Made by a program: the position numbers and the translations under genes
Assembly: GCA_001179505.1 (NCBI GenBank)
Contig: CDMY01000400.1
Coordinates: forward strand, 1 to 64,000
Direction of reading: 5' to 3'
DNA length: 64,000 nt
Source: Vitrella brassicaformis CCMP3155
Taxonomy: Eukaryota; Protista; Chromerida
In this document: positions 11,842 to 31,008 of the stretch, in pieces
Layout of the letters: every line of letters starts with the position of its first letter
Position numbering within the stretch: position 1 is the first letter of the stretch
Notes under the pieces: generated by a model
Database searches by the model: none
What the model saw: the letters and a program-made list of their open reading frames with translations, nothing else
What the model was told of the DNA's origin: nothing

Positions 11842-12017
11842 GAAACCTCTAGGATCGCATCATAGCTCGCTTTTGCGAGGTTTGCGGCCGCTTCCTTTCC
11901 ACCCTCTGCTCTCCCCAGCGGTCAGAGATCCACAGCTAGGTGGACAACAACCTTCATCAGAATCCCCCAGTGGACGAGCACAGCGTGTGGCGACCTCCCC
12001 CATCTCTCTCAAGCGTG

Positions 12018-15000
12018 ATGGCGTCGAATTACGAAAACGCCACAACGTTCTCGTCTGACGTGAGTGCGGGCGTAGCTTGCTCGATGGTGTCCACCCTCCC
12101 CAGCGGGAGCCAGCCGATGATCCTCACTAGTGGACAGGCGGGGGATAGGCACGACAACAAGAAGCTGGATGACAAGGGCGTGAATGCCAACTCCGAGAAG
12201 CAGACCATTACGCTGCGGACGGAGGGCTTCCTCCAGACACTCGAGGAGAAGCCGACCCCCACCAAGCCGCACCAATTTGTCGCAGACTGCGCGAAGGAAT
12301 CGGTGAGGAGCAGGGGACGTGCGGGGCGGACGGGGGGTGGCCCGTCGGTGATGTGTGTGTGTGTGTGCTCTCAGATCAAGGAGGCGACTGTGAAGCGGTT
12401 CCTTCCTATAGTAGGGTTTGTGACCAAATATAAGACGAGCTTCCTCAGCGATGACATCACGGCAGGTGGGATTCACAGATCAGGCGAACACACAGGATCA
12501 CAACAGAAAGGAAGACATTGCTTTCGTGTGTGCCTGGTTGATGAATGTGACACAGGTATTGCTGAGGGCATCATGGCCATCCCTATGGGCATGTCGTACT
12601 CGCTGCTGGCCAACTTGCCGCCGGTGTACGGCCTCTACAACCAGCTGTTTCTCCCCCTCATCTACATGCTCTTCGGCACATTCCACCACGCGTCCATCGG
12701 GACCTCAGCCATCGAAGCCATCTTATGCGCTGAGGCCGTCGCAAATGTCATTGGGTGAGTCGATTGACGCCACACAACCGACCCATCAGCACAGAAACAG
12801 AACCAACACCTCTGTTTGTGTGTTCGTGTCATCCATCATCAGTTGGGACGCCCCGCTTACGGAGCGGGTGCCTGTGACGATCAGTTTGGCGGTGTGTGTG
12901 GGTGCGACTCACATGGTGCTGCGGCTGATGCGTGTGGGTGTGGTGGTGGACTTTATCGCTGACCCCGTCCTGGCGGGATTTTCCACCGGTAAGGGGGTCA
13001 GTCACGACGATCGATTAGCATGTCACGCGTGTGGGTGTGCGTTTTGCGTGCAGGCGCAGCGTTTCTGATCGCGACGTCTCAGCTGAAGGATCTGTTTGGG
13101 TTTCCGGTGCCGCGGACGGACTTTGAGGCCGAGCAGTGGTGGCACATCCTCACCAACCTCCCGCAGACCAACTGGACCGCATTCACCATGTGTAAGCCAC
13201 CTCCCCCTCAACCTGTCTCCCCGCCCCAAGCACCACAACACGGCACACACCCCATCCATGCACATCGATGGCTCACTGTCACTGTGAGTTGTCCGCTTTG
13301 TGTGTGGTTCAGGTGTGAGTGGGCTGATCATTCTCTTTCTCGTCAAGTGGGTCAACGCCCGCTACTTCAAGAAGTTCCCCTTGCCCGGGCAGCTGATTGT
13401 CATGGTACTCTTCACCTTGCTCACCTGGCTCTTCCAGCTCAACGAGGCCCCGTTCAACCTCAGGATCCTACGCGAGATACCCCAGGGCTTCCCCGTCCCC
13501 GATGTGCCGCACTTCCAGGGCCACTTTGTGCAGCTGTTTCGGCAGGCCATCCCATTGGCTGTCATGGTTTACGTCATACACATTTCCGTCGCCAAGACAG
13601 TCGGCAAGAAACACGGGTACGCGCACGAGAAGCCAGGGCAGCATTGTGTGGAAGAGATCGCAGATTCTTGTGTTGTATGGTGTGTCATTGTTCGTGTCTG
13701 CAGGTACCGCATTGATGCTGAGCAGGAGCTGGTGGCGTACGGCATGACCAATCTAGTAGGGTCCATGTTTCAGTGCTTCCCGGCGGGCAACGCCGTGTCT
13801 CGCGTGGGAGTAGTCTCGTCCGTGGGCGCCAAGACCATCCTGCACACCTTGCCCAACGTCGCTGTGGTGGCTCTCACGCTCTCTCTCATCACGCCGCTGC
13901 TCTTCTACCTGCCCTATGCTGCACTCGCATCCGTCGTCTTCTTTGGCACCTACGGTGAGCAGCGAATTCAGCCAAGACGCGGGTGGCCAGCACAGTCCAT
14001 CAATTTGCGTCTCTCTCCTGTCAGGCATGATCAATTTCCAGGAGGGACGTCGTCTGTGGAAGTTCAAGAACCCCGACTTCTACCTCTGGGCCACGTGCCT
14101 CCTCGTCACCGCCACACTCGGCGCGATGGAGGGCATCATCGTCGCCGTCGTCCTCTCTCTCATCTGGCTCCTCGGCAAGAGCGCCAGGCCAAACGCTACT
14201 GTACTCGGACGCCTTCCTGGCACTTCCAGCTACCATGAGGTGCGCGAGCAAAGACAGCAACGCACGGTGCTTGTTGTTCTCCCATCAAATACAGCGACAC
14301 ACGTTGGTTGTTGTTGTTCTCTCATCAGATTCACCGGTTCCCCACTGCGCGTGAGATCCCCGGTGTAAAGATCTTCCGCTTCGACGCCGACCTCAACTTT
14401 TCTAATGCGGAGTTCTTCGAGAGCAAGGTGCTGAGCGTGATCAAGCCCTCGGGCAGCAAACCGGACCGCGTCGACGAGGAGGAAGGTGGCGACGGGGAGG
14501 TGCCCACGCAAACGGTCATTGTGGACTGCAGCGGCATCAACTCCCTGGACGTCACGTCCATTGGCATGCTTGAGCGACTGGCTCAATGGTTCCAGGAGCA
14601 GAAGCTCGACTTACTCTTCGCTAACTGGAAGGGACCGATGAGAGACTTCCTGGGTACGTTGACGAGCCGAATGCACATGCATTGTCCATGATGTCCTCCA
14701 TGATGATTGTGTGCGTGTCGTTCGTTGCTCAGACCGTGCCGAGTTCTTCAAGGTGGTGCCGGCCGACCACTGCTTCCTCTCACTGCATGACGCCGTCATC
14801 TACTCAGCCGTGCGCCACACCGCCCACAAGCACGCCAAGATCGAGATTGACAGCTCCGCAGAGGCCCATCTACACATCCTCTCGCCCCACCCCTCGCCCC
14901 GCGCCTCGGCCCGCCGCCTCTCGAGCGTCGACTCCAAGAGCGACGCCGCACTCGATGAGCCCGACAGTGAAATGGTTGTCGAGGGCCCGACAGACGCCGA

Positions 15001-15244
15001 GAAGACAAGCGAGGCGTCGAGGCCGGACTCGCCCCATCCGCTCAACGTCGTCGGTCGGCAGATGGATGCCGACCGGCAGTCTTCGGGCGCTGTGGGTGCG
15101 CTGTTGTGGGGTGTGCACATGGACGACGACGAGGAGGCGGGCGTGCTGTGGGACGGCCATATGGAATGGGCACAGAACGTCAGGGAGGTTAACCAGGCGG
15201 GGACCGAGAAGACCTGGGGTATCGTCAGCATGACGCACCCGTGA
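12018..15244 (+). CDS. SLC26/SulP anion (sulfate/bicarbonate) transporter with STAS domain
   Basis: Multi-exon. DDITAG|IAEGIMAIPMGMSYSLLANLPPVYGLY (SLC26 signature), PVLAGFSTG, QELVAYGMTNLVGSMFQCFPAGNAVSR, and STAS IFRFDADLNFSNAEFF...VIVDCSGINSLDVTSIGML. Confidence 0.95.
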
Positions 15245-16522
15245 GACAATGAGGCCCATATGGGTGGGTGGTGCGGTGGTTGTGTTGCATGTCGCATGGT
15301 ATCGCATTTATTCTCACTTGTCTCTCTGCACGTGCCGTCCACTGACATGTGTTTTCTCCACCTAGCCCGCTTGTAGGCGCTGGTACTGCTCACCTATCTA
15401 CCACTCGAATGGCACCTCGTTCACGTGTCGTTCGATTAGTGCCGTAGGTCCGTTTGTATGGAGAAGTTGGGGGGCTTTTTCTCTCTGGTCGCCTTTTGTT
15501 TGTCTTCTCGTTCGTTGTGTGATGTGTGCTTGTGTGTGTGCCTGCAATTGTGTGTATAGTGAGCTGGCTTGCCTGCCGTGCTGTATGTGCGTGTGATGCG
15601 TCCGTCTGCACTAGATGCTCGACTGGCGTCCGTCTGGTGTGGTGGGTGGGTCCTGTCCTCTGCCTGTCAGTGTATTTATTGTCTTATGTGAGTGAGTGAC
15701 CATTGTGCGACTGACTCAATCGTGTGGATAACACCGTGGGGCCGGCCGGTCCATTCGTGGGTTGCGTGTGCGTGCTCGTGTTGCCTGGACTCAGTCTGAG
15801 AGAAGCACAGATGCCACTCCAACAAACAGACCTTCAATCATTCTGTTCAAACTTAGAGACGTGAAGAATGGCGTACATGACATGTCTCGCGCTATCTTCC
15901 CGTCAGCGACGACTGGGCGTGTGCAGCACCCAATGACAGGCACCCAATAGTCAGTCACACGTCTGTCTGTCTGTCTGTCTGTCTGTCTTCGTGGCTGTCA
16001 GGGTACACACATTGTCATTTACTCAACACACATAGACACAGCGAGGCAGACAGGCAGGTAGGCAGCTCCAGGTTGGAAAGAAAAAATAACAAGTGTCGGG
16101 CCTTCCCACACACAAACGCACATACACAGTCATGCACACAGGGACCTATGCAGTAGGGCAGGATACCGACACACACATTTGACGATCAGGTCTAAGATCC
16201 CTCCTGTCGAGTTGCCGGCTGACCACAGCTCTTCATTCGTTCAGCCATCATCTATTCACAGCAAATTGAGCGGTTCTGTGGGATTCCCGCGGTGCGGCTT
16301 AGGCAAATCCCTCCGTAAAACCCCGCCGCGAGGGAGGGAGGGAGGGAGGGAGGGAGGGAGAAATGGTTTGAAATGGTTGTCCCCTCTCCATCTATCCCTC
16401 CCTCCATCCATCTATATCTCTTCTCCCGTCCTCCAAAATCATCCCCTGCTTTGACTCTGAGCGACTCCTGCCTCGACTCTCTTCATCTATCAACAGCCGC
16501 CTACTTGCAATTGCCCGCGTCC

Positions 16523-17951
16523 ATGGCTCTCTTCTCGCGCCTAACGCTCTTAGCCCTCGCCGCTCTCCTGGTGGCGGCGTGGATGCCCTCTGCCACCATG
16601 GCCAGCACAGCTGCTGCTCCCACTGCACGTCCTCTTGATGAAGCTGAAAATGGCCTGACGACTCTGGACGAGCTCGAGGTGCCTGACGAGGACGAAGAGG
16701 AAACGTTCGATGCCGACGAATACGAGGATGATGAGAACGAGGATGAGGACGAGACTGACGACGACGAGCTCGATGAGGACGAAGATGAGGATGAGGATGG
16801 GCCTCTGACGTCGGGCAACCTGACGTCTGGCAACCTGCGTGCCCTGCGTAAGCAACCGACCACATGCAATGCACCTATCCACGGCTGCCGGATGGCCATC
16901 ACCCCTGCCCTTCCCTTTGTGTTGTGTGGCGTGGTGTGCAGGCGCCCGTCCCAGTTACTGCTCATACTGTGGCCCTGGCTACCACTGCGGGGGCGGAGGA
17001 TGTAAGGAATGAGACAGACAGAGATGCACACCGGTCGCACTCGTCACTGTGTGTGTGCTTTCAGGCATTCCCGACTGCCCAAGGTGCCCACCTGGCTACC
17101 GCTGCTGGCGCGGCCGATGTAGGGAATGAGACAGACAGAGATACACACCGGGCGCTCGTCAACGTATGTGTGCTTTCAGGCATTCCCGACTGCCCAGTGT
17201 GCCCACCTGGCTGCCGCTGCATTCGCGGCCAATGTAAGGAATGAGACAGACAGAGATACACCGGGCGCTCGTCAACGTATGTGTGCTTTCAGGCGTTCCC
17301 ATCTGCCCAGTGTGCCCACCTGGCTACCGCTGCATTCGCGGCCAATGTAAGGAAGGAGACAGACAGAGATACACCCCGGTTGCTCGTCAACGTATGTGTG
17401 CTTTCAGGCATTCGAATCTGCCCAGTGTGCCCACCTGGCTACCGTTGCTGGCGCGGCCAATGTAAGGAATGAGACAGACAGAGATACACCCCGGTTGCTC
17501 GTCAACGTATGTGTGCTTTCAGGCATTCGAATCTGCCCAGTGTGCCCACCTGGCTACCGTTGCTGGCGCGGCCAATGTAAGGAATGAGACAGACAGAGAT
17601 ACACACCGGGCGCTCGTCAATGTATGTGTGCTTTCAGGCATTCGGGTCTGCCACTGCCCGCATGGCTGGGGCTGCAGACGCGGCAGTTGTAAGTGACGAG
17701 ACAGACAGCGGTGTCGTAGCCACGGGGTAGTCAGTCAGACGACGAGTCGACGTGTTGCTGCGTGTTGCTTTCAGGCTATCCCCCTACCTGCCCCCCTGGC
17801 CACGACTTCTTCAACGGCGGTTGTAAGTGATGAGACCACACAGAAAGACAGCCAGACAGACAGACACTACACAAAAACGACGTGACACGTCAACACATGT
17901 GCCCACCGCAAATCCCTGTGATGCTTGTGTCTTTCAGGCCAGAGACGCTGA
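16523..17951 (+). CDS. Secreted prepro-peptide with acidic pro-region and tandem 4-Cys modules encoded by micro-exons
   Basis: Ten exons: 16523-16847, 16942-17001, 17065-17118, 17180-17233, 17293-17346, 17408-17461, 17523-17576, 17638-17688, 17775-17822, 17938-17951; all introns phase 1 GT-AG. Product: MALFSRLTLL signal peptide, D/E tract, NLRALR, ARPSYCSYCGPGYHCGGGG, five modules of the CIPDCPVCPPGYRCWRGQ type, CIRVCHCPHGWGCRRGS, CYPPTCPPGHDFFNGG, CQRR*. Confidence 0.85.
17002..17690 (+). repeat. Tandem ~115-bp exon+intron repeat (about 6 units)
   Basis: Exon starts at 17065, 17180, 17293, 17408, 17523 and 17638 (spacing 115, 113, 115, 115, 115). Introns are nearly identical (gtaaggaatgagacagacagagatacac...gtatgtgtgctttcag). 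Confidence 0.95.
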
Positions 17952-18049
17952 CTGCACTCGTCTGCCGCCGTGATGCGTGCGCCGCTATTCTTTGATTAAG
18001 TCTACGGATGTGTGACCCACTGTTCTTTTATTAAGTCCATAAATGGATA

Positions 18050-18830
18050 CATGTGCGCGCGTGTTGCGTGTTGCGTGTGCATGTGTGTGTAAAAAGAGAG
18101 CTGGCCTGCCTCTGTACGTGTTGTGCGTCTGCACTGCATAGTCTGTTGGCGTCTGGAGCGGTGTGTGCTGTCAATTGCCTGTCAGTGTACTGGGTTATGT
18201 GTTGACTTTGCCATGGAAATAGACACGCGGGTGGGGGAGGGGGGAAGGGAACAGGGGCTGGGGAACACCGGGTTCATATCATGGGTGTGGTGTGCTTGTG
18301 TGCTGTCTGGACTGAGAGAGGGGTGGATGTTGCCTGATGTGGGTGTGGGTGTGGATGCGGTGGGCATGGCATCCTGGCCATCACATGCATACCCACACAT
18401 TCGTCACATACGGTCATTTGTCTGTCACTCACGTGTGTGTTGGTAGTGCCCTGTGTGTATGTCTGTCTGTCTGTCTGTCTGCAAAGTTCGCAGTGCACCT
18501 GTGCCCTTTGTTGTACATTCGTAGTGGATTTGTTGCGTGTGGGAGGGCCGTAGTGAGTTTCTCTTCATCGCATGACTGACACGCTGGGGGGACACCTGGG
18601 GGACACGAAGGAACGGACACTTACCATGAATCGTCACCACAAACACCTGACGGCCTCGATTGCCACGTGAATCTGTGAACCGACAAAAGCTCAACAAAGT
18701 GTCCCTCACCCCATCTCTCCCGTCCCAGCCCCTGCCCTCCCCTGCACAAAGAAAGAGCGAGCGAAACACACATCGGCCAAGGGAACGCACAGGTGCCTGA
18801 TTCCATGGTGTGAGACAGTGGTGGAGCACC
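18050..18830 (+). repeat. Non-coding 3' flank duplicated in inverted orientation at ~29620-30390
   Basis: Long shared blocks, e.g. ctcttcatcgcatgactgacacgctgggg, accatgaatcgtcaccacaaa and tgattccatggtgtgagacagtggtggag, occur as reverse complements at 29.6-30.4 kb. Confidence 0.9.
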
Positions 18831-19811: not shown

Positions 19812-20076
19812 GGCCAGCGCGCCGGACGGCCTGGTTTTTGGCGAGGAGACGAATCATTCACTTCCTGACATTTAAAGCGTAGGGATTTTTGAGAGAATGT
19901 CTCGGTGTCGCTGTAGGGCTTGACGCATCCTGCGTATGCATATATGAGCCGGCTGCACATTTCGTCAAGCCCTACAGCGACACCGAGACATTCTCTCAAA
20001 AATCCCTACGCTTTAAATGTCAGGAAGTGAATGATTCGTCTCCTCGCCAAAAACCAGGCCGTCCGGCGCGCTGGCC
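19812..20076. mobile_element. Foldback/MITE-like element: perfect 114-bp inverted repeat with a 37-nt spacer
   Basis: 19812-19925 is the exact reverse complement of 19963-20076 (GGCCAGCGCG...CTTGACG / CGTCAAG...CGCGCTGGCC). GGCC termini; no obvious target-site duplication; non-coding. Confidence 0.75.
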
Positions 20077-26551: not shown

Positions 26552-28457
26552 ATGGCTCAGCTTGCGGGAATCGTGTGGACTCTGCTGGTCGCCCTGTCCC
26601 TGGTGGCCAGTCAGCCCTCTGCAAACAAGACGCCCGTGGTTTCCTACAGCACATTCAGCCTGGTGAGTGATGGTGCCGCCAACGACCAGCCGAGTGTCCG
26701 TGCGCTCAGCAGTCCGCCACCGCGTCCAGCTGGTGCAGCTGGCATCCACCGCATAATCGTCAAGCTCAAGCACCCACACACCGAGGGCCTTGCCCGCGCC
26801 GAGACCATCTCGAGGGCACTGCAGGCCTCCCTGTCAGCCGAGACCACCGTGCACACGGCTGAGACGACGGTCCACCACCTCAACAGCTTGTCCATGGACG
26901 TGGTGGATCTGCCGCTAGGTGTCGATGCAGCGGCCACATGCGAGGCTGCCCTCCTGGCGTCGGATGAGATCGACATCTGCGAGCCGGATGCCGTTGTTGC
27001 GACGGCCTCTGGCCGCAGGCTGCGTGCCCGGGCAGCACAGGAGCCCAACCGCTTCGTGCCCGACGACCCAATCTTCAAGGAGCAGTGGGGGATGGCCAGC
27101 ATCGATATGCCCGAGGCGTGGGCCTTCCTGTCTGAGCAGCAGCAGGAGACGGCCAGTGGGGCCGACTCAGTGGGCAAAGGTACGGTGGTCGGGGTGATTG
27201 ACACCGGTGTCGACTACACCCATCCGGACCTCAAGGACGCCATGTGGGTCAATCAAGGCGAGATCGCTGGCAACGGCATCGATGACGACGGTAGGGATGC
27301 AGGGAGGGAGGGGGGGAGGGAGGGAGGAAGGGACATCCACACACACGATCTGCATGCATTCCTGGGTCTGTATGTGTCTGTGTGCAGGTAACGGCTTTGT
27401 TGATGACATTCACGGCTGGGCCTGGTGCGACGGATCCGAGAACCCGCACATTGGCGACGGCGATCCTATGGATGAGGGTGGCCATGGAACTCACTGTGCA
27501 GGTACCAGAACTCGCCCTCTCTCTTCGCATCATCACCTTGATCCTTCACCGACGACGTGATCACTGTGCAGGTACCATCGCAGCGACTGCCAACAACCAG
27601 GAGGGCATCGCAGGCGTCGCATTTGGCAGAACCAAGATCATAGCACTCAAATTCCTCTGCGGCGAGGTAAGTCGAATAACCATAGGGTCGCGGGGCGCTC
27701 AAATCACATGTCTGTGTGCCCCTACATCAGGATGGTCGGGGTTCCCTTGCTGACGCGGTCCACGCAATCAACTATGCCGTTGCCATGGGGGCCACGCTAA
27801 CAAGCAACAGCTGGGGCTACCTTGGGTCTACTGCATACAGGGCGCTCGAGGAGGCCATCAGGGAGGCAGAGGAGGCCGACATGCTGTTCATCGCCGCGGC
27901 TGGCAACGACGACAACGACAATGACGGCCCCAGGAAAGGCTACCCGGCATCATCTGAGCTGGACAGCATCATCAGCGTCGGCGCGGCGACTAGAAATGGA
28001 GAGAAGGCGCCCTTCAGCAACTACGGCCTCGAGAGCGTTGACGTCTTTGCGCCGGGGACGAGAATCTTCTCGACGATGCCCGGTGGCAAGTATGCGGCAA
28101 TGGGGGGCACCAGCATGGCAACGCCATTTGTCGCTGGTACGCAAGCACTGAGGACTGCTGTGTGATACCCATTAGACGATCCAATCGACTGTTGGTTTCT
28201 TTGTGACTTCAGGTTTGGCTGCCCTTCTGTGGTCGACGGATCCGGCGCAGAGCTATTGCGACATCAAGCATCGCATTCTGTCGACTTCCGAGAAGATGGA
28301 CTCGCTCGAGGGCCTGTGCGTCACGGGGGGCCAGATCAACGCACTGAAGGCCGTCACGTGTGCCGATTGCAAATGGACCCCCACGGAGGAGCCGACGGCG
28401 GCTCCGACGGAAGTTCCCACGCAGGAGCCTACGACGGAGGAGCCGAGTACCCCGTAA
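26552..28457 (+). CDS. Secreted subtilisin-like serine protease (S8) with propeptide and Thr/Glu/Pro-rich tail
   Basis: Signal peptide; pro-domain ending GRRLRARAAQ; catalytic triad motifs VVGVIDTGVDYTHPDL, GHGTHCAG|TIAA and GTSMATPFVAG; oxyanion AAAGND; tail PTEEPTAAPTEVPTQEPTTEEP. Confidence 0.95.
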
Positions 28458-29619: not shown

Positions 29620-30390
29620 CTCCACCACTGTCTCACACCATGGAATCAGACCTGTGCGCTCCCTTGGTTGATGTGTGTGTCGCTCGCTCTTTCTTTGTGC
29701 AGAGGAGGGCAGGGGCAGCTGGGCCGGGAAGGGTGGGGTGGGATACTTGGTTGATCTTTTGTCGGTTCACACATTCACGTGACAACAACTTGAGGTGGAC
29801 GATGAGCGAGGCCGTTACGTATTTGTGGTGACGATTCATGGTGAAGTGTCCGTTCCTTTGTGTCCCCCAGGTGTCCCCCCAGCGTGTCAGTCATGCGATG
29901 AAGAGAAACTCACTAGGCCGTCCCCTCCCACACGGAGCAGAAATCCACTACAAATGTACAACAAAGGGCACAGGTGCACTGCGAACTTTGCAGACAGACA
30001 GACAGGGCACTACCGACACACACATGTGCGTGACAGACAAATGACCGTTTGTGACGAATGTGTGGGTATGCATGTGGTGGCCATAATGATATCATGCCCA
30101 CCGCATCCACACCCACACCCACATCAGGCAACATCCACCCTCTCTCAGTCCAGAAAGCACACAAGCACACCACACCCATGATACCAACCCGGTGTTCCCC
30201 AGCCCCTGTCCCCTTCCCCACTTCCCCCACTCGTGTGTCTATTTACATGCTGAAGTCACACACATAACACAGTACACTGACAGGCAAAAGGCACACACAA
30301 CACCACACAACAAAAACTATGCAGTGCAGACGCATAACGCAAACAGCAAGACAGGCCAAGTGCTCTTCACACTTACGCAAACATGCACAC
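29620..30390 (-). repeat. Inverted copy of the 18050-18830 flank
   Basis: Reverse-complement matches to 18.05-18.83 kb; lies 3' of the paralogous peptide gene at 30515-31008. Confidence 0.9.
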
Positions 30391-30514: not shown

Positions 30515-31008
30515 TCAGTACCTCCGGAAGCCTGCACACATGTCCCGGACAGAGAGCTGCCCTGTGTCCTATGTGCTTCTGTCTCATCCCTTACATTTGT
30601 GGCGCCAGCAGCGATAGCCGGACCGGCAATGGCGGTCTTGACGACAATCATGAGGTCCTGCACAGCAAAAACCACAGAAGGGAGGGGTACGTGATGATGC
30701 TCACTCACTGTCGGGCCAGTCGTGGGTGCGTTGTGGTCGTGCTCACCCAGTGCACGCAGGTTGCCCGACGTCGCAGGCCCGTCCTTCTTCCCTTCATCCC
30801 TCTCATAGGTCTCAGGCTCATCGACCAGCAAGTCCTCTTGTTCATCCACAATCGTCAGGCCAATGTCAGATCCATCAACAGCAGCAGGAGGGGCAGCAGT
30901 AGTGGAAGCGGGAGCAGCAGCTGTGCTGGCCACCGTGGCTGAGGGCATCCACACCGCCACAAGCAGAGAGGCGAAGACAACCAGTGTCAGGCGCGAGAAG
31001 AGAGCCAT
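30515..31008 (-). CDS. Secreted prepro-peptide, single-module paralog of 16523-17951
   Basis: Exons 31008-30747, 30657-30595 and 30531-30515 (phase-1 introns): MALFSRLTLVVFASLLVAVWMPSAT...acidic...ATSGNLRAL-GPHDCRQDRHCRSGYRCWRHKCFRRY*. Confidence 0.85.

Follow-up and report, generated by a model that had tools for sequence, protein, structure and literature searches.

Extracellular proteins built of cysteine-rich modules, the EGF-like ones among them, grow by duplication and shuffling of phase 1-1 exons, and in precursors of the defensin type an anionic pro-piece masks a cationic product. In the micro-exon genes (MEGs) of schistosomes the exons measure 3-81 bp (bioRxiv 10.1101/2023.06.21.545858), and accelerated evolution of these genes has been reported (PMC4350168). 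Here we analyse a gene at positions 16,523 to 17,951, on the plus strand of a 64,000-nt stretch of Vitrella brassicaformis CCMP3155 (contig CDMY01000400.1, positions 1 to 64,000; the whole stretch is called the window below), which a reading of the sequence alone had likened to MEGs and had interpreted as a source of disulfide-rich peptides of variable length, with length switches built into its introns. Vitrella is a coral-associated, free-living alga and sister to the apicomplexan parasites. The gene is real, expressed and spliced as modelled. The best explanation of the whole, which we hold to be likely, is that it encodes an expressed secreted prepro-protein with a charge-masked product of defence type, that it grew by duplication of a 115-bp unit, and that its intronic stops were inherited in the course of that growth.

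The gene model was obtained by reading positions 16000-18600 and scanning for T/GTRRG donors and YAG/GC acceptors (here and below the slash marks the exon boundary). It comprises ten exons on the plus strand, eight of them internal, 48-60 nt in length, all multiples of three and all of phase 1-1. The nine introns all lie in phase 1 and measure 59-115 nt, and the joined coding sequence (CDS), assembled by script, is 768 nt long, in frame, and encodes 255 residues. The elements of the gene are the following.

16423..16522, plus strand: 5' untranslated region (UTR); the alignment of RNA-like contigs starts at 16423
16523..16847, plus strand: exon 1 (E1), 325 nt, with the signal peptide (~27 residues), the acidic pro-piece (net charge -35) and the SGNLRAL end; exon-1 homology with ~9 paralogs
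16848..16941, plus strand: intron 1, 94 nt, phase 1; GT..AG joint 16847->16942 in runs X10, X12 and X9
16942..17001, plus strand: E2, 60 nt, the first and more diverged Cys module; gene model and RNA contigs
17065-17118, 17180-17233 and 17293-17346, plus strand: E3, E4 and E5, 54 nt each; gene model
17408-17461 and 17523-17576, plus strand: E6 and E7, 54 nt each; gene model
17001->17065, 17118->17180, 17233->17293, 17346->17408 and 17576->17638, plus strand: joints found in RNA contigs
17347..17407, plus strand: intron 5, 61 nt, the copy without an in-frame TGA (GAA GGA) on read-through of its donor
17638..17688, plus strand: E8, 51 nt, a diverged module; joints 17576->17638 and 17688->17775
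17775..17822, plus strand: E9, 48 nt, a diverged module with two Cys; joints 17688->17775 and 17822->17938
17938..17951, plus strand: coding part of E10, C-Q-R-R-stop (TGA); gene model and RNA contigs
17952..18299, plus strand: 3' UTR; RNA contigs span 17938 to 18234-18299
16974..17643, plus strand: 115-bp tandem array, 5.8 copies; Tandem Repeats Finder score 1021, 91% matches

The eight phase 1-1 micro-exons of 48-60 nt hold, in coordinates as in counts, as the sequence-only reading had given them. Its further claim, that each exon splits a Cys codon (T/GC), stands at the 3' end of every internal exon, 8/8 of which end in T before a GT donor, but not on the 5' side of E2, where an Arg codon (C/GC) is divided instead. 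At the 5' end of the gene, some 63 further letters of the RNA-like contigs fall in a masked simple repeat (16321-16422) upstream of 16423. Two upstream ATGs are found at 16363-16375; the one at 16373, in or close to the part of the 5' end that is transcribed, is in frame with 16523 and is separated from it by no stop (open reading frame (ORF) 16373-17005). We favour 16523 as the start codon because its ATG is conserved in all paralogs.

To establish expression we drew on a search of sequencing runs, in which some runs hold about half of the sampled words (spliced-RNA-like) and others about 94%. Four of them were aligned on positions 16100-18500 in the form of k=31 contigs, with joints listed at a 1% threshold: the RNA-like runs X10, X12 and X9, from two studies, and the DNA-like run X2. 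Contigs of the three RNA-like runs between them jump exactly across the predicted GT..AG introns, 9/9, with one contig of 730 nt running from the 5' UTR through E1, E2, E3, E4 and E5 into E6, and others running from E7/E8 via E9 and E10 into ~350 nt of 3' UTR. The DNA-like run, our DNA control, follows the genome without interruption through the introns and yields 0 joints. As no intron-less copy of the gene was found in the assembly either, the joined forms are taken to be RNA. Transcription of the locus, without which the sequence-only reading would have fallen, is thereby confirmed, with all nine joints in the RNA-like runs and none in the DNA-like one. A unitig shared by E6 and E7 has an RNA depth 1.5-2.1x that of its flanks (44.4 vs 29; 81.6 vs 46-48; 15.7 vs 7-9), roughly the two copies expected. 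One listed joint in X9, 17461->17638, is non-consecutive and reflects an ambiguity of placement between E6 and E7: its short side of 23 letters is identical in the two, and it is the same sequence as the joint 17576->17638, which was observed in X10 and X12.

The module exons and their introns form the tandem array at 16974-17643. Each unit consists of one 54-nt module exon and a 59-63-nt intron (E3-E7 with their introns), and the introns that follow E2 to E7, all of 59-63 nt, are nearly identical. The youngest units, 17347-17461 and 17462-17576, differ at 1 base in 115, a T-to-G change that abolishes the TGA of intron 5. A search of the whole assembly with the unit DNA found no other matching locus. 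With homologous exon and intron copies lying next to each other, in the same phase and joined in mRNA contigs, this is tandem exon duplication. The array grew out of a gene with a single module, of the kind seen in the paralog at 30515-31008 described below, by repeated tandem duplication of the 115-bp exon and intron unit, probably via unequal crossing-over, and such growth stays in frame because the exons are symmetric (phase 1-1).

To see how the modules have changed since, the five core units were compared pairwise. Exons differ at 68/540 positions (12.6%) and introns at 36/610 (5.9%), and the codon differences comprise 34 non-synonymous and 6 synonymous ones, with multi-base changes at four codons (CCC/CGA, GAC/ATC, AGG/GTG, TGG/ATT). 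Fisher's test gives p = 0.018 for non-synonymous vs synonymous-plus-intron sites and p = 0.09 for exon vs intron variable sites alone. These comparisons suggest diversifying change of the modules and bear out the earlier observation that module variation is focused at a few residues. Most of the alterations since duplication fall on four or five presumed surface positions of the modules and are multi-base codon replacements that change the amino acid, with the short introns remaining nearly unchanged.

Exon 1, used as a protein query against the assembly, identified about nine paralogs (E-values 2e-20 to 3e-4). They have in common a near-invariant signal peptide, an acidic pro-piece whose length varies, and the motif SG[NGS]LR[AG]L, which ends exon 1 in every copy; their mature parts are cationic and otherwise unrelated between subgroups. 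A paralog with a single module lies in the window.

30515..31008, minus strand: single-module paralog (21 residues), with exon 1 at 31008-30747, the module exon at 30657-30595 and the last exon at 30531-30515

The gene and this paralog occupy the arms of an inverted segmental duplication (16517-18794 vs 31014-29650, 86-98% identical in blocks), within which the module exon and its donor align at 78% and the 3' UTR of the gene is homologous, in inverted orientation, to the 3' flank of the paralog. Since the two are duplication arms, a one-module ancestor that expanded in the present copy is the simplest history. The 3' flank of the gene (18233-18794 vs 29650-30227, within the inverted duplication) also has pieces that recur in the 3' regions of the paralogs L002, L004 and L006, which suggests that a 3' UTR element may be shared in the family.

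Outside the window, L002 (G000:C286:125614-128901) and L006 (G000:C626:35085-38375) have the same signal and acidic pro exon, joined to mature parts of 61-64 residues that lack Cys, are made of GRW repeats and runs of His, and have a net charge of +19 to +22. In both, the stop codon directly precedes a relic TGTAAGTGAGAC donor-like sequence. L003, L007 and L008 are mixed Cys and His-rich forms. Throughout the family the Cys modules occupy one exon each, which ends in ..AAT/GT, the Cys being completed by GC, and because this split-Cys phase-1 junction is found wherever Cys modules occur we regard it as ancestral to the family. A further paralog, the protein P0001, has a mature part of two 27-29-residue Cys modules and passes the threshold of the Pfam family Dickkopf_N (PF04706; 33.4 bits vs a cutoff of 25), its best solved match being DKK4 (E 0.05). 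Taken singly, paralog modules match the same profile in its first half (C-x2-D-x-D-C-x2-G-x-Y-C). N-terminal word searches of the public protein set (88-367 aa) returned only the paralogs P0001 and P0002 and never the present product, so that the gene seems to be absent from that set, where a model with another first exon or length would be missed. Metagenome scans found nothing with the exon 1 protein and, with a 17-base module word, 110 single chance matches and no array. The only relatives found are Vitrella paralogs, and the gene is, as far as these sequences indicate, a member of a lineage-specific family that includes a Dickkopf_N-like protein.

The predicted product begins with a hydrophobic leader of 27 residues, continues with a pro-piece of 81 residues (-35) and ends with a mature part of 147 residues (+18, 31 Cys). 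In the mature part seven to eight modules of ~18 residues and 4 Cys each (C-x3-C-x2-C-PPGYRC-x-RG-x) follow one another, every module being encoded by one phase-1 micro-exon whose last T opens the next Cys codon. The SGNLRAL motif coincides with the end of exon 1 and marks the predicted pro/mature boundary. In this gene only, a 15-bp tandem duplication (2.2 copies, 16805-16837) doubles the TSGNL of the boundary motif. The R-x-L core of the motif recalls the cleavage sites of apicomplexan export motifs, a resemblance only.

In five members of the family the charges of pro-piece and mature part are paired as -35/+18, -26/+19, -25/+22, -15/+13 and -9/+6. In sequence the gene and its paralogs have the features of charge-neutralised precursors of cationic peptides: behind a signal peptide the pro-piece is anionic and the mature part cationic, and across the family the prepro region is conserved while the mature region varies. 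Because the charge of the pro-piece follows that of the mature part, and because a conserved motif stands at the boundary, we read the product as a masked precursor: before cleavage behind the motif the acidic pro-piece would offset the positive charge of the mature part, and the released mature product, multivalent, cationic and rich in disulfides, would have an extracellular action. We infer secretion, processing and an extracellular role from the sequence. The secreted disulfide-rich repeat protein of the sequence-only reading thus stands as a transcribed gene with one module to each symmetric phase-1 micro-exon, its secretion being predicted. The family of charge-balanced cationic, presumably secreted proteins in Vitrella would be a set of candidate defence or surface-interaction factors.

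The main functional rival keeps the same gene and the same history and makes the product structural or adhesive, for example a metal-binding protein or a constituent of the wall of the cell or the sporangium, in place of a defence-type effector. We consider it unlikely, albeit with some points in its favour: 31 Cys in 147 residues form a rod-like periodic array rich in Pro and Gly, and a subtilisin gene (26552-28165) adjoins the paralog in the window. What speaks for the masked precursor instead is that the pro charge tracks the mature charge across mature parts unrelated in sequence (Cys modules on the one hand, Cys-free GRW and His-rich forms on the other), which fits charge-masked cationic peptides better than wall proteins, and that the modules change fast, with a bias to amino-acid replacement.

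A different proposal concerns the splicing, and holds that the symmetric exons and the donor-proximal stops are a selected device in which regulated skipping or retention yields peptides of varied module number. Any internal exon could indeed be skipped in frame, the Cys being rebuilt at the junction, and with introns of 59-115 nt retention is a plausible mode of alternative splicing. The early stops were reproduced at seven of the eight micro-exon donors, where retention would end the protein 2-3 residues past the completed Cys: read-through gives C-K-E-stop at the donors after 17001, 17233, 17461 and 17576, C-R-E-stop after 17118 and C-K-stop after 17688 and 17822, with none after 17346, and the TGT AAG GGA TGA described for the minus-strand paralog is present at 30595. 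The RNA depth of E6/E7, at 1.5-2.1x and not a clean 2, would also allow some one-copy transcripts. We nevertheless find such a device improbable, on account of the origin of the stops, the fate expected of retained introns, the confinement of the pattern to this gene and its paralog, and the RNA contigs.

That a retained intron completes the Cys follows automatically, since T followed by GT can only read TGT. The introns after E8 and E9 and the intron of the paralog start with the same GTAAG..GAGACAGACAG stretch as the array introns, and all of these introns therefore go back to a single one. Copied as parts of a young 115-bp tandem repeat, the stops are not independent events; their origins would number about two, a codon-4 TGA common to the paralog and a codon-3 TGA at the donors of E8 and E9, the E9 donor carrying both. 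Against a background of about 8% per donor (of the 577 GTRRG sequences in the window, 45, or 7.8%, are followed by a stop at codon 3 or 4), one or two stop events among ~16 family donors are unremarkable. At eight homologous T/GT donors in five paralogs the first in-frame stop comes at codon 8, 17, 45, 4, 26, 33, 23 and 3, so that only 2/8 have an early stop and 6/8 are without one, and the closely related L007 and L008 differ at the same donor place (CGA vs TGA). Within the gene itself, the sole change since the last duplication destroys a stop.

Nor do stops of this kind set the gene apart. Of the introns of Yarrowia, more than 90% carry a stop in frame, and those of 3n length that lack one are counter-selected (PMC2911113), which was interpreted as favouring decay of intron-retaining transcripts (PMC2911113); most introns normally bring in a premature stop when they are retained (PMC2911113), a eukaryotic rule that marks such transcripts for decay and argues against a device particular to this gene. 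Here the only intron of 3n length (63 nt) contains a stop, and retention of intron 5 (61 nt) shifts the frame, with a stop at the next donor. Every retention but the last would leave exon junctions downstream, and the likeliest fate of retained-intron transcripts would be decay or the status of a minor by-product, not that of a programmed product.

The sequence-only reading had also proposed a genome-wide search for the T/GTAAG donor signature, and this revealed no genome-wide device. The architecture pattern (acceptor, 40-58 nt, T/GTRRG, 40-70 nt, acceptor) has 5 matches in the 72.7-Mb assembly, all in this gene (control: 0-1 matches in the 72.7-Mb assembly), and a donor 17-mer with <=2 mismatches exceeds its control only in this gene and the paralog, the other matches numbering 12 vs 15 in the control. 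Six introns were folded, with z-scores of -0.6 to +1.3, and no structure accounts for the conservation of the introns, nor do the folds lend support to a model of self-pairing introns. The three RNA-like runs contain no listed intron-spanning contig, except for pieces on a GACA-rich stretch (17846-17866) that continue into unrelated sequence, and at the 1% threshold no distinguishable non-consecutive joint of the kind that exon skipping would leave. The built-in switches thus give way to stops copied in a young duplication, whose youngest change destroys one and which the paralog donors mostly lack, and the proposed repertoire of skipped and retained forms to contigs with fully spliced joints only. 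A variable module number in use, by retention, by skipping or possibly by change in copy number of the 115-bp DNA, which would give a small cationic repertoire from one gene, is to our mind a slim prospect. Most simply, the stops are a by-product of recent duplication, and a new splicing-based mechanism of diversification is not established.

A polyprotein precursor cleaved at the module boundaries into many two-disulfide peptides of 18 residues is the least probable reading and very improbable in itself, for although the identical or near-identical serial modules recall multi-copy peptide precursors and most end R-G-R or R-G-Q, there are no spacers between modules and no dibasic or other conserved cleavage motif, the residue at the boundary is one of the Cys of the pattern, and E4 carries an odd fifth Cys.

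Several points weigh against the account that we prefer, that of a secreted, charge-masked prepro-protein grown by unit duplication. The 16373 start, if used, would put 50 residues ahead of the signal peptide, and the signal peptide and the cleavage site were assigned by visual inspection and from conservation. The single modules of this gene (21-25 aa) are without a Pfam family match. Contigs drop rare forms, so that no isoform proportions follow from them; E6 equals E7 in sequence, so that skipping of one of them would be visible by depth only, and the E6->E7 joint is not listed. The signal of selection comes from ~13 variable exon and ~7 variable intron sites, and the conservation of the introns may partly reflect splicing constraint in introns of ~61 nt. 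Finally, in the DNA-like run (contigs on 17265-17489) the E5-unit sequence, present once in the assembly, has a depth of 106 and the E6/E7-unit sequence, present twice, a depth of 181, with flanks at 33-42; at a depth 3-5x that of the flanks, the array may have more units than the assembly contains, or a copy number that varies.

Two other features of the window lie near the gene. A perfect inverted repeat (19812-20076; 114 nt, 100% complementary, 37 nt between the arms) is found between the gene and the subtilisin region, and the upstream neighbour on the plus strand (11940-15300) is a multi-exon sulfate permease (SulP), with Pfam Sulfate_transp on four ORF pieces.

The gene offers a clean, RNA-verified case of protein growth by tandem duplication of a tiny exon and intron unit, and with introns still 94% identical while the exons have already diverged it should be useful for studying the origin of repeat proteins and of micro-exons. 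It resembles schistosome MEGs in its signal-peptide first exon, in the short symmetric 3n exons that follow and in a secreted, fast-evolving product. By contrast, its introns measure 59-115 nt and those of MEGs 0.1-5 kb; MEGs have documented isoforms that skip central exons, whereas only the full form was observed here in RNA contigs; and MEG exons are mostly ~15 bp and not tandem copies, whereas these are recent tandem duplicates of 48-60 nt. There is no sequence relationship between the two, and MEGs are restricted to Schistosomatidae, while this gene is found in an alveolate alga. As to what defines a MEG, the gene has most of its CDS in such exons, with eight symmetric exons of 48-60 nt behind a signal-peptide exon, and has neither the long introns nor the lineage.

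Growth of the EGF type is matched by one disulfide module per symmetric phase-1 exon, by secretion and by tandem exon duplication, but the modules here have only 18 residues and 4 Cys, the split codon is always that of the boundary Cys, and the intron was duplicated with the exon as a 115-bp unit whose copies are still 91-99% identical. The link to Dickkopf_N (PF04706) runs through P0001, which passes the threshold of that family and shares the prepro exon and the T/GC junctions with this gene; the modules of the gene itself are shorter and have an extra Cys (C-P-x-C), and no role related to Wnt is implied. Precursors of defensins, cathelicidins and conotoxins are similar in that a conserved signal and anionic pro-piece precede cationic mature parts that are unrelated between paralogs, and different in that there is no sequence homology and that the 147-residue mature part, known here from sequence, is far longer than is typical of them. 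Secreted cysteine-rich repeat proteins (SCREPs; PMC6262176) are likewise secreted tandem repeats of a small disulfide-rich domain, and the product falls within this descriptive class, which is one of architecture and not a homology family, and whose members are mostly two-domain venom toxins, as against eight modules here, in an alga. The gene is better described as a phase 1-1 tandem exon duplication in a secreted SCREP-like protein than as a MEG.

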